A stretch of 63,301 nt of DNA, the filler included, from Bigelowiella natans CCMP2755 (lineage: Eukaryota > Protista > Cercozoa), in NCBI GenBank assembly GCA_000320545.1. It is 4 parts of 4 records of this genome, joined end to end, with 100 filler letters (N's around TTAATTAATTAA, not from the genome) between each part and the next. Parts side by side here need not be neighbours in the genome. Positions count along the whole stretch, not along the records: positions 1 to 26,184 come from ADNK01000798.1; 3 more parts are not named here. One strand, 5' to 3'. The position numbers were made by a program, and so were the translations under genes. Positions 11,101 through 15,000 of this stretch are shown piece by piece; within the stretch, counting starts at the first letter, position 1; every line of letters starts with the position of its first letter. Below the pieces are notes generated by a model that was not told the DNA's origin, ran no database searches, and saw only the letters and a program-made list of their open reading frames with translations.

Positions 11101-14100
11101 GAGTACATTTGGACTTTGCCAAATCTCAAAGAGCGTCTTGATGATGCCGGCGCGGTTGCGACCTTAAGACAATATGCTTTACAAGACTACAAGACTAATT
11201 CTACTATGCAAGATCACGTAATTTTTAACGTGGTTGACATATTTATGTATGTAATATATATACATACACATGTATATATATATATATATATATATATATA
11301 TATATGTGTGTGTGTGTGTGTGTGTGTGTATGTATTTGTACAAGTTATGCGGGTGTGAGTCTCAACAGAACAAATGCGATGATTCAAATGCAAACAACTT
11401 TGTAGAGCTCAGATGCATAAGGAGGAGGATATAGAGAAAGTAGCGCTTGTGTGTTTGTGTTTGTGTGACAATAAAAAGAATAATGTGCTTATGAAACGGC
11501 TACTTCTACTCCTCTCCACCTCCTCGGCTTCTTGCTTTGCCTTCTTCTCAGCTTCTCTGCGTCTCCTCTCCACCTCCTCAGCTTCTTGCCTGGCCTTCTT
11601 CTCAACCTCATCACGAATTAACTGAATCTCTTCATCATTGCAGAGAAAATGAACGATATCGTTATGAGCTAGCTTGTTAGCCCAGTACAATGCGGTGTTG
11701 CCTAGTGCAAAAATTAAACAAACGATTGCGAGGCAAAACAACAGCAGTGTCAATCGCAATCAACTAGCCATCAAATCAACCCTACAACATCAAAAATTGC
11801 AACCACAAAACACTCAAACAGACTACTAGCAACCCAAAATAACATTGTGTACTACTTCTGCTACAACTACATCTACTACCTCTACTACTATTTCCATTAC
11901 TCACTACTCACTACTCAAAACTATCACTAATACCAAAATCACTACTGCTACCAACAACAATTACCATCACCCACCCAACACTGCAAATGCTGCCTAAACG
12001 CTAGCAATACTGCAGCTGCTACCCACCGTCATTGTTCTTCGCCCCGATGTTTGCCTTCATACCAACCAGGTACTTGACGGTCTCCAAATGGCCATTGGAA
12101 GAACCCGAAATCAACGGCGTATCACCTGGTGGCATGCGACCCCATTTTAGACGCACAAACAACAATGACACATGTATACAATATCAGCAACCATCCTCAA
12201 ACTAACTTCTAATTTAATTAACTTTTGTAAAACTAATATTACTGTCTCTACTAATATCAATGCTCAGTTTACCAGTCTCTGCTACTCGCTACACAATGCT
12301 GATACAGCTTCTACCTCTTGTACTCACTACTCAAAACTATTGCTAATACCAACATCACTACTGCTACCAACAACAATTACCATCACCCACCCAACACTGC
12401 AAATACTGCCTAAACGCTAGCAATACTGTAGCTGCTACCCACCGTTATTGCTCTTCGCCTCGATGTTTGCCTTCATACCAACAAGGTACTTGACGGTCTC
12501 CAAACGGCCATTATGAGATCCCGAAATCAACGGCGTACAACCTGGTGGTATGCGACCGCATTTTAGACGCACAAACAACAATGACACATGCACACAAAAT
12601 CAATAACCATCCTCAAACTAACTTCTAATTAAATTAACTTTTGTAAAACTAACATTGCTGTCTCTACTAATGTCAATGCTCAGTTTACCAGTCTCTGCTA
12701 CTCACTGCACAATGCTGATGCAGCTTCTACCTCTTGTACTCACTGCTCAAAACTGTTACTAAGACCAACATCACTACTGCTACCAACAACAATTACCATC
12801 ACCCACCAAACACTGCAAATACTGCCTAAACGCTAGCAATACTGCAGCTGCTACCCACCCCAATTGTTCTTCGCCTCGATGTTTGCCTTCATACCAACCA
12901 GGTACTTGACGGTCTCCAAATCGCCCTTACGAGATCCCATAATCAACGGCGTCCAACCTGGTGGTATGCGAACGCATTTTAGACGCACAAACAACAATAA
13001 CACATGTATACAAAATCATTAACCATCCTCAAACCAACTTCAAATTAACTTTGTAAAACTAATATTACTACCTCTACTAATATCAATGCTCAGTTTACCA
13101 GTCTCTGCTACTCACTACACAATGCTGATACAGCTTCTACCTCTTGTACTCACTACTCAAAACTATCACTAATACCAATGTCACTACTGCTACCAACAAT
13201 GATTACCATCACCCACCCAACACTGCAAATGCTGCCTAAACGCTAGCAATACTGTAGCTGCTACCCACCGTTATTGTTCTTCGCCTCGATGTTTGCCTTC
13301 ACACCAACCAGGTACTTGACGGTCTCCAAACGGCCATTATGAGATCCCGAATACAACGGTGTCCAACCTGGTGGTATGCGACCGCATTTCAGACGCACAA
13401 ACAACAATGACACATGTGTGCAATATCAACGAATATCCTGAAACTAACTTCTAAATATTTTTTGCAAAACTAATATTACTACCTCTACTAATGTCAATGC
13501 TCAGTTTACCAGTCTCTGCTACTCACTACACAATGCTGATACAGCTTCTACCTCTTGTACTCACTACTCAAAACCATTACTAAGACCAATGTCACTACTG
13601 CTACCAACAACAATTACCATCACCCACCCAACACTGCAAATACTGCCTGAACGCTAGCAACACTGCAGCTGCTACTCACCGTATTTATTCTTCGCCTCGA
13701 TGTTTGCCTTCATACCAACCAGGTACTTGACGGTCTCCAAATGGCCATTGAAAGATCCCAAAATCAACGGCGTACCACCTGGTGGCATGCGACCGCATTT
13801 TAGACGCACAAACAACAATGACACATGTATACAATATCAGCAACCATCCTCAAACTAACTTCTAATCAAATTAACTTTTGTAAAACTAATATTACTGTCT
13901 CTACTAACATCAATGCTCAGTTTACCAGTCTCTGCTACTCATTACACAATGCTGATACAGCTTCTACCTCTTGTACTCACTACTCAAAACTATTACTAAG
14001 ACCAACATCACTACTGCTACCAACAACAATTACCATCACCCACCCAACACTGCAAATACTGCCCAAACGCTAGCAATGCTGTAGCTGCTACCCACCGTTA

Positions 14101-15000
14101 TTGCTCTTCGCCTCGATGTTTGCCTTCATACCAACCAGGTACTTGACGGTCTCCAAATGGCCATTGTAAGATCCCGAAATCAACGGTGTCCAACCTGGTG
14201 GTATGCGATCCCATTTTAAACGCACAAACAACAATAACACTTGCATGCAACATCAACAACCATCCTCAAACCAATTGTAAAACAAATGTTACCACCTCCA
14301 CCAACATCAATGCTCAGTTTACCAGTCTCTGCTACTCACTACTCAATGCTCATACAACTACCACTCCTCATACTCACTACTTAAAACTATTACTAAGACC
14401 AACATCACTGCTGCTACCAACAACAATTACCATCACCCACCCAACACTGCAAATACTGCCTAAACGCTAGCAATACTGCAGCTGCTACCCACCGTCATTG
14501 TCCTTCGCCTCGATGTTTGCCTTCATACCAACCAGGTACTTGACGGTCTCCAAATGGCCATTGTGAGATCCCAAAATCAACGGTGTTTGACCTGGTGGTA
14601 TGCGACCCCATTTTAGACGCACAAACAACAATGGCACATGTGTGCAATATCAGCAACCATCCTCAAACCAATTTCTAATTAACTTTTGTAAAACTAACAT
14701 TGCTGTCTCTACTGATGTCAATGCTCAGTTTACCAGTCTCTGCTACTCACTACACAATGCTGATACAGCTTCTACCTCTTGTACTCACTGCTCAAAACTA
14801 TTACTAAGACCAATATCACTACTGCTACCAACAACAATTACCATCACCCACCCAACACTGCAAATACTGCCCAAACGCTAGCAACACTGTAGCTGCTACC
14901 CACCGTTATTGTTCTTCGCCTCGATGTTTGCCTTTTGCTCAACCAAACACTTCAGACGAGCGAGATCGTTGTTCTTTACTGCTTCGAAGATGTCAGACAT
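8176..15000 (-). CDS. Ankyrin repeats + coiled coil + tyrosine-kinase-like domain + SAM domain protein
   Basis: ATG at 15000 ([31 protein letters not shown]); seven 99-nt ankyrin exons; GNTALYWA exon from 11701; kinase motifs [57 protein letters not shown]; SAM-like [10 protein letters not shown]...EDLVKLGIP; stop at 8176. Confidence 0.9.
11900..14935 (-). repeat. Tandem array of ~400-416-bp exon+intron units, each with one 99-nt ankyrin exon
   Basis: Exons at 12027-12125, 12443-12541, 12859-12957, 13269-13367, 13680-13778, 14096-14194 and 14493-14591, all with CAG acceptors and GT donors in phase 1. Each encodes [23 protein letters not shown]. Introns are highly similar to each other. Confidence 0.95.

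Follow-up and report, generated by a model that had tools for sequence, protein, structure and literature searches.

A tandem ankyrin exon-intron array of Bigelowiella natans with the probable footprint of TpA-specific hypermutation

Mutation-accumulation (MA) lines of Bigelowiella natans have revealed a regional hypermutation that affects TpA only and turns it into TpG or CpA (Mettrop et al. 2026, bioRxiv 10.64898/2026.01.13.699255). According to that preprint, two integrated viral regions gain ~6e-7 mutations per site per generation in these lines, with nearly all mutations being A>G or T>C, every one at TpA, and with only some lines affected; the 186-kb target derived from a nucleocytoplasmic large DNA virus (NCLDV) is single-copy by both read depth and BLAST, and 124 clusters depleted in TpA and enriched in CpA+TpG were counted genome-wide. 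Its authors proposed an ADAT2-like adenine deamination acting as a foreign-DNA defence, and drew an analogy with the repeat-induced point mutation (RIP) of fungi. Here, we analyse a stretch of 63,301 nt of B. natans DNA (the window; contig label C2939 in genome-wide comparisons), which contains a tandem array of ankyrin exons and introns at positions 11905–14934, against the reference genome of the species (91.4 Mb, 3736 contigs). The assignment to B. natans agrees with an ORF on contig C1391 that shares 100% identity with JGI protein Bigna1/42181; a protein-atlas look-up of a CLASP-like ORF resolved it no further than eukaryote. The TA, CA and TG differences among the copies of this array are probably the footprint of the TpA-specific A:T→G:C hypermutation of B. 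natans, because the excess of TA transitions, the occurrence of both products, the regional action and the low rho_TA of the flanking blocks all match the known process.

The correspondence with the published system is close—the organism is the same, TpA becomes TpG or CpA on both strands, only transitions are involved, the action is regional and patchy, and the flanking blocks display a long-term loss of TpA with a gain of CpA+TpG. Unlike the targets in the preprint, however, the locus is an ankyrin gene with introns, of cellular type, together with its flanks, and is not a recognisable viral insert; moreover, it is seen in an intermediate state, with about a quarter of its sites converted, and the evidence for this state comes from paralogues, not from MA lines. 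The process is therefore one already described, and the locus is a new kind of target at an intermediate stage. Ankyrin Pfam families were not enriched among the TpA-depleted gene sets in the coding-sequence screen of the preprint, as far as its main text and part of its supplementary files report, and these same parts contain no discussion of ankyrin, tandem repeats or introns (10.64898/2026.01.13.699255).

Three other systems invite comparison. Fungal RIP, in Neurospora and others, is likewise dinucleotide-specific, restricted to transitions and regional, and leaves skewed dinucleotides in multi-copy DNA. RIP nevertheless changes C to T at CpA, thereby making TpA and stop codons, whereas here TpA is destroyed and stops cannot arise; RIP also needs duplication, whereas equally duplicated arrays remain untouched in B. 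natans and a single-copy target is known. A second parallel lies with the ADAR, ADAT2 and TadA enzymes, in which A is read as G and a U or T is preferred 5' of the edited A—in the tRNA substrates of ADAT and TadA, the edited A34 always follows U33. The change described here, in contrast to that of ADAR, ADAT and TadA, is fixed in genomic DNA, and while ADARs favour a 3' G, this is the least favoured base among the mapped de novo events considered below. Finally, the methylation-deamination of CpG also consumes a self-complementary dinucleotide and yields two products, each from one strand; it starts, however, from another dinucleotide and runs in another direction, and CpG transitions are not elevated in our comparison although C5-methyltransferase domains are encoded in the genome.

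Direction and size of the TpA excess

The exon-plus-intron unit of the array recurs in arrays elsewhere in the genome, at twelve or more further loci. We aligned 51 near-complete paralogous units from 12 loci of the same genome, built a maximum-likelihood tree and polarised the differences in two ways: (a) terminal-branch changes were accepted only if the sister clade and the next clade agreed, and (b) an out-of-clade consensus was used, with the ancestral state fixed by at least 85% of 34 units from other loci. At ~20 intronic sites, 30–34 of the 34 units from six other loci have TA, and among the window units some copies have CA and others TG, with CG essentially absent. Both products can be reached in a single step from TA, and from no other state that was observed, so the changes run from TA to CA or TG. 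This is the polarity that a sequence-only reading of the window had put forward, and the variants on which it relied are all present: one intron site reads TATA (12175, 13007, 13828), CACA (12591), TGTG (13417, 14641) or CATG (14244), gccTAaacg appears as gccTGaacg (~13645) or gccCAaacg (~14061, ~14868), and ctaaTAtcaatg also exists with TG and with CA. For the first of these sites, the quoted states stand, with one detail to amend: across the family, TATG and not TATA is the consensus.

Aligning the units and counting changes by dinucleotide context, as that reading had recommended, revealed that TA transitions exceed other A:T transitions by a wide margin. On the terminal branches of the window units, 29 of 390 TA opportunities (7.4%) had undergone a transition, against 13 of 943 (1.4%) at other A:T (odds ratio (OR) 5.7, p=7e-8). 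When conserved positions of the window array were scored for the presence of a derived transition, the same picture was obtained, with 17/33 at TA versus 5/46 at non-TA A:T (OR 8.7, p=1e-4) and 4/53 at G:C. Altogether, 23% of conserved intronic TA is converted in the window units (8–38% per unit), the corresponding transition values being 4.4% for other A:T and 2.5% for G:C; the array was thus rightly described as caught part-way, and it lies beside a block in which conversion is nearly complete. The excess is also visible in introns family-wide (TA 71/2508 vs other A:T 53/4409; OR 2.4, p=2e-6).

Both products contribute, with 44 T>C and 36 A>G at TA across the family and 18 and 11, respectively, in the window, where many sites have both products in different units. 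TA transversions showed no elevation in the family comparison; neither did CpG transitions (9/643 vs 115/5468 at non-CpG G:C family-wide; 4/227 in introns) or changes from CA or TG to TA (46/2405 family-wide). Strand-coordinated, processive mutation within units was considered and ruled out by permutation (p=0.89). Transitions in the 51 units are asymmetric between the strands with respect to transcription: on the coding strand, A>G transitions amount to 2.27% and T>C to 1.51%, and C>T to 2.76% and G>A to 1.75%. The ankyrin family is without CpG hypermutability even though the genome carries C5-methylase genes.

Paralogous loci, flanks and competing explanations

The paralogous arrays differ sharply in how far they are affected. 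TA positions are hit in 1 of 35 cases in the C2654 array (8 units; 3.2% of TA converted), in 1 of 28 in the C891 array (6 units; 6.4% converted) and in 3 of 35 in the C858 array (5 units), and the window differs from each of them (p=4e-6, p=4e-5 and p=1e-4, respectively). The units of these three arrays are at least as alike to each other, and their copy number is similar or higher. The C746 array, by comparison, is hit at 11/41 TA positions (OR 5.2 vs non-TA A:T; 19% of TA converted), and the C554 array is partly affected.

The signal is not confined to the tandem units. In a 5-kb non-tandem flank, the window lineage has undergone TA transitions at 11/506 versus 8/2330 (OR 6.5, p=1e-4), and six of the eleven changes cluster at 11326–11415. 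Directly upstream of the gene, the block at 15001–16750 retains 14 TA in 1750 bp, with none from 15337 to 15893 and with 10 of the 14 survivors being CTAGC. Taken together, the flanking blocks have rho_TA values of 0–0.29 (a range that also holds for the upstream block by itself) and rho_CA+TG values of 1.3–2.15, versus 0.96 and 1.36 for the array. Most copies of the dispersed repeat that makes up the upstream element are TA-depleted. Its least-changed copy, on C1536, has 46 TA; at these sites, the window has CA 18 times, TG 8 times, CG 3 times and TA once. Compared with the copy on C2926, the conversion products of the window are concordant at 18 sites and discordant (CA vs TG) at 7, so that conversion must have gone on after the copies separated. 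The arrays on C2926, C554, C2949, C2654 and C746 likewise have TA-free blocks next to them, and such adjacency alone does not predict how strongly an array is affected.

The sequence-only reading had taken the array as a sign that duplicated sequence inside a gene is targeted and that the process may be repeat-induced, and we considered whether TpA hypermutation could be triggered by repetition, as in fungal RIP, with the array being hit as a set of duplicates. Both the array and the surrounding 9.5-kb segment are indeed multi-copy, the upstream TA-free element is a largely TA-depleted dispersed repeat, and the preprint likens the process to RIP (10.64898/2026.01.13.699255). Repetition is not sufficient, however, because the arrays on C2654, C891 and C858 consist of the same unit and are untouched, with 3–6% of TA converted versus 23% in the window; nor is it necessary, because the main target in the preprint is single-copy. 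Furthermore, the C1536 copy of the upstream element keeps its TA, the units lack strand-coordinated runs, and the TA excess of the window reaches into non-tandem flank. We therefore regard a repeat trigger as unlikely.

An ordinary neighbour effect, by which TpA would be slightly more mutable everywhere without any targeting, fares less well still. A weak excess does exist outside the window (51/2379 vs 67/4941; OR 1.6, p=0.017), and under-representation of TpA is common among genomes. This explanation is hard to reconcile, however, with the strong differences among paralogous loci of similar age or with the sharp TA-free blocks beside TA-normal DNA, and the baseline spectrum outside the hypermutable regions is AT-biased (GC>AT/AT>GC = 2.65; 10.64898/2026.01.13.699255), all of which leaves it very improbable. 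GC-biased gene conversion among units, driving weak-to-strong changes, would account for the A:T→G:C direction, and tandem arrays do undergo conversion, as the odd/even alternation of CTGCAGC and CTGTAGC (detailed below), a trace of higher-order duplication or exchange, also illustrates. However, conversion makes no new variants and to our knowledge has no TpA specificity; A:T positions outside TA show no elevation (5/46, as given above), the number of distinct variant positions is independent of copying, and the same signature is present in the non-tandem flank, so that we give this mechanism hardly any weight. A reversed polarity can practically be set aside: although RIP gives CpA→TpA, and CA and TG are also the two deamination products of CpG, TA is the state of nearly all units at the other loci with CA and TG in the minority and CG absent, neither CA/TG→TA changes nor CpG transitions are elevated, and the laboratory de novo events run from TA to CA/TG (10.64898/2026.01.13.699255).

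Several points weigh against attributing the array differences to TpA hypermutation and temper this preferred reading. Conversion at the locus is deduced from the comparison of paralogues, and not from events in MA lines, and the polarisation combines paralogue consensus and terminal branches rather than a full ancestral model. Of the 26 conserved positions at which a derived transition was scored, 17 are TA, so that the changes also include background divergence; gene conversion between units can copy variants, to which the count of distinct variants is immune. The arrays on C2654 and C2949 adjoin TA-free blocks, yet have little or no TA excess, and the window array is itself TA-rich up to a sharp boundary with its TA-free block, so that simple spreading from this block is not established. 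Conversion rises toward the block with an estimated Spearman coefficient of ~0.67, which over 7 units is not significant, and the rise is only suggestive. Finally, CTAG, which is spared in the data presented in the next section, is not enriched among the remaining TAs of the NCLDV region (3.6% against 5.2%), a result that is uninformative because it depends on the original composition of the virus.

Sequence context and the sparing of CTAG

The motif CGCTAGC had been singled out as invariant in the array, and it is found unchanged in all eight units (11999, 12415, 12831, 13241, 13652, 14068, 14465 and 14876), with 50 of 50 family units keeping its TA. Nearly the same constancy is seen at two further TA sites, and one invariant site cannot by itself prove protection. 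Broader counts, however, show that CTAG is exempt. In ~137 kb of fetched genome divided into 250-bp bins, non-CTAG TA falls 13-fold between normal and depleted bins (78/kb and 6.1/kb), whereas CTAG stands at 3.1/kb and 2.7/kb, respectively (share test p=1e-25). Among the CTAG sites surviving in depleted bins, 40/43 are preceded by G or followed by C, with GCTAGC making up 18; the corresponding figure for intermediate bins is 40/81 (p=4e-7). Within the array, CTAG was altered in 0 of 78 opportunities. The invariance of the intronic CGCTAGC is accordingly explained by the escape of CTAG from the process.

The published de novo mutations allowed the context to be resolved further. Contig C3187 carries the hypermutable NCLDV insert; 70 kb of this contig (85001–155000), with a major capsid gene at 124672–125196, were analysed here, and a 40-kb sample of the NCLDV region has a rho_TA of 0.46 (0.45 in the preprint) and a rho_CG of 1.06, without CpG depletion. 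The entries of Table S2 of the preprint consulted here cover the two viral regions only. We placed the 118 positions of this table that fall within these 70 kb of C3187, with scaffold_10 coordinates equal to C3187 coordinates plus 329226, and at this one offset all 118 fall on TA. Among these 118 mapped events, none occurred at CTAG in 190 opportunities (4.4 expected, P=0.011), two at CTAC/GTAG (2/656) and seven at CTAA/TTAG (7/742), and WTAW was the class hit most often, at 32–43 per 1000. For the base immediately 3' of the A, the order of preference is T>A>C>G, with G at 10 versus T at 37 per 1000; for the base two positions to its 5' side, the order is A>T>G>C. Both strands of the TA site behave alike in this set, which suggests recognition of a duplex site. 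A single-strand rule, in which only a C at −2 or only a G at +1 would be protective, is ruled out, since CTAA, CTAC, GTAG and TTAG do mutate and the strands are alike. Neither the dependence on the tetranucleotide nor the exemption of CTAG is mentioned in the main text of the preprint or in part of its supplementary files.

The CTAG sites of the TA-free block are mostly non-orthologous between paralogues that are 77–83% identical. A process that creates CTAG was considered and set aside: because the density of CTAG equals that of normal DNA, ordinary turnover combined with the exemption was judged sufficient. As a separate observation, the window has GCTAGCTAGC at 16594–16603, and the upstream element on C2926 has CTGG followed by three CTAG, both being absent from the paralogues. 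These tandem duplications of the exempt tetranucleotide could have arisen by slippage or by fill-in of a 4-nt overhang. Elsewhere in the genome, an uninterrupted open reading frame (ORF) of 643 aa at C1391:110191–112119 contains a full-length C5 DNA-methylase domain (PF00145, E=2e-76). Unnamed metagenomic proteins make up most of its nearest relatives, alongside a few from algae. Judging from its sequence, this bacterial-type C5 methyltransferase is a candidate for a site-specific modification.

Taken together, these data show that the process acting on the array turns TA into CA or TG, affecting both strands about equally, through transitions only and without a CpG effect. It has operated regionally—on the array, on the patch at the 3' end of the gene and on the fully converted block upstream—and has left other arrays of the ankyrin family untouched. 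Sequence is read beyond the dinucleotide, with WTAW attacked most, CTAC/GTAG and CTAA/TTAG rarely and CTAG, especially GCTAGC, never. The chemistry may be adenine deamination on either strand, for which the preprint offers an ADAT2-like candidate; some regional mark may designate the DNA for attack, and CTAG may be spared either by the specificity of the enzyme or by a protecting modification. More tentatively, it is possible that the sparing of CTAG, mostly as GCTAGC, reflects duplex-site recognition, by way of a protective modification or of a mutator that reads a context of 4–6 bp, and that hypermutation domains also take in functional, intron-bearing host genes lying beside fully converted blocks.

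Gene architecture, surroundings and significance

The array was delimited by Tandem Repeats Finder (TRF) with a period of 416, 7.4 copies and 89% matches, and its repeat unit consists of a 99-nt ankyrin exon and an intron of ~317 nt of the GT-AG type, on the minus strand. The gene contains eight GT-AG introns, with GTGGGTAG as the donor (in one case GTGAGTAG) and CCACCAG as the acceptor, and its reading frame is intact. The genetic code is such that TA→CA/TG changes create no stop from a sense codon, and TAA and TAG are removed; this inability to create stops fits the intact frame and splice sites of the gene. The seven 99-nt exons, searched singly against Pfam, each match Ank (PF00023) at positions 3–33 or 4–33 of 33, with E values from 1e-6 to 5e-4; six of the seven score above the curated cut-off of 21.1 bits, and the seventh reaches 20.8 bits. 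One ankyrin exon and one intron of a nuclear gene have genuinely been duplicated in tandem to form the array, and the expansion is recent. Between 12128 and 14492 (units 1–8), odd and even units without exception carry different forms of one motif, CTGCAGC or CTGTAGC, which indicates growth of the array by duplication of two-unit blocks. The coordinates of the main features are collected in Table 1.

Table 1. Features of the ankyrin locus and its flanks; positions are those of the window.
Feature	Position	Strand	Evidence
416-bp tandem array, 7.4 units, partly TpA-converted	11905–14934	-	TRF, unit alignment, conversion fractions
Exon 1, 97 nt; ATG at 15000–14998, N-terminal half repeat, then donor GTGGGTAG	14904–15000	-	
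Ankyrin exon unit 7, 99 nt, phase 1	14493–14591	-	PF00023 E=1e-6, splice sites
Ankyrin exon unit 6; highest TA conversion of the units, 38%	14096–14194	-	PF00023, splice sites
Ankyrin exon unit 5	13680–13778	-	PF00023, splice sites
Ankyrin exon unit 4	13269–13367	-	PF00023, splice sites
Ankyrin exon unit 3	12859–12957	-	PF00023, splice sites
Ankyrin exon unit 2	12443–12541	-	PF00023, splice sites
Ankyrin exon unit 1; lowest TA conversion of the units, 8%	12027–12125	-	PF00023, splice sites
Predicted last exon: ankyrin-like half repeat and E/K/R-rich tail, stop codon at 11409–11411	11409–11701	-	
CGCTAGC (TA never changed), first of eight identical intronic copies	11999–12005	.	50/50 family units keep TA
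Cluster of 6–7 window-specific TA→CA/TG changes at the gene 3' end; C554 and C2069 keep TA	11340–11470	.	Three-way alignments
Compound (TA)n(TG)n microsatellite; TA/TG boundary and interruptions vary among three paralogues by TA/TG changes	11239–11333	.	
Block almost devoid of TpA, immediately upstream of the gene; dispersed repeat family	15001–16750	.	
Second nearly TpA-free block: 9 TA, rho_TA 0.06–0.22, rho_CA+TG 1.3–2.15	6251–7250	.	
Segment in three genome copies (also C554, C2069; 93–96% identical), containing the ankyrin gene and a fragment of a kinase gene	6241–15700	.	

Exons and introns of the ankyrin family change at similar rates on terminal branches (124/3438 vs 358/11326). Exon changes cluster at repeat positions 1, 6, 9–12 and 30–33, with the TPL... 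framework fixed, a pattern that, as far as sequence can tell, is the one expected of variable binding surfaces. The first exon reads KCLV where the repeats read KYLV, which had been thought consistent with a TA change; this proposal is not supported, as the exon-1 codon is TGT, and across the paralogues this codon is CGT at 5 loci, TGT at 5 (counting that of the window) and TAT at 1. The distribution points to a CGT→TGT change at a CpG, rather than TAC→TGC, as the probable origin of the cysteine.

Direct repeats of ~290 bp at 6113–6407 and 15356–15641, 84% identical to each other, bracket the triplicated 9.5-kb segment, and further copies are located on C2909, C2926, C1536 and C3515. In the compound microsatellite listed in Table 1, the TATG interruptions of C554 and C2069 correspond to TGTG in the window, which suggests that the TpA process helps to turn (TA)n into (TG)n tracts; similar junctions, (AC)n(AT)n and (AG)n(AT)n, occur at 25936–26018 and 1445–1513. 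The TA-free blocks contain long ORFs overlapping in several frames (e.g., 15309–15788, 6271–6720 and 6510–7001). The ORFs of these blocks gave no Pfam match, and those of the C1536 element gave nothing relevant in Pfam, the one match (G6PD_N) being in a neighbouring ORF. The long ORFs of the TA-free blocks are probably spurious, since TAA and TAG are absent on both strands—a practical lesson being that TA-free DNA yields long spurious ORFs.

For the biology of B. natans, these results imply that the process also reaches beyond DNA recognisable as viral, in that an intron-containing gene family of cellular type has been hit. Paralogous arrays of identical architecture range from 3% to more than 20% conversion, which argues against a repeat-sensing trigger, and the affected and unaffected arrays constitute matched loci for the comparison of chromatin, small RNAs and methylation. 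The tetranucleotide hierarchy with its complete sparing of CTAG emerges alike from old TA-free blocks, from the array and from de novo mutations already published; this hierarchy offers a simple biochemical read-out for candidate deaminases and points to duplex-site recognition or to a protecting modification. If host genes beside converted blocks are indeed drawn into the hypermutable domains, this multigene family would provide a natural time series from which the targeting rule may be read.

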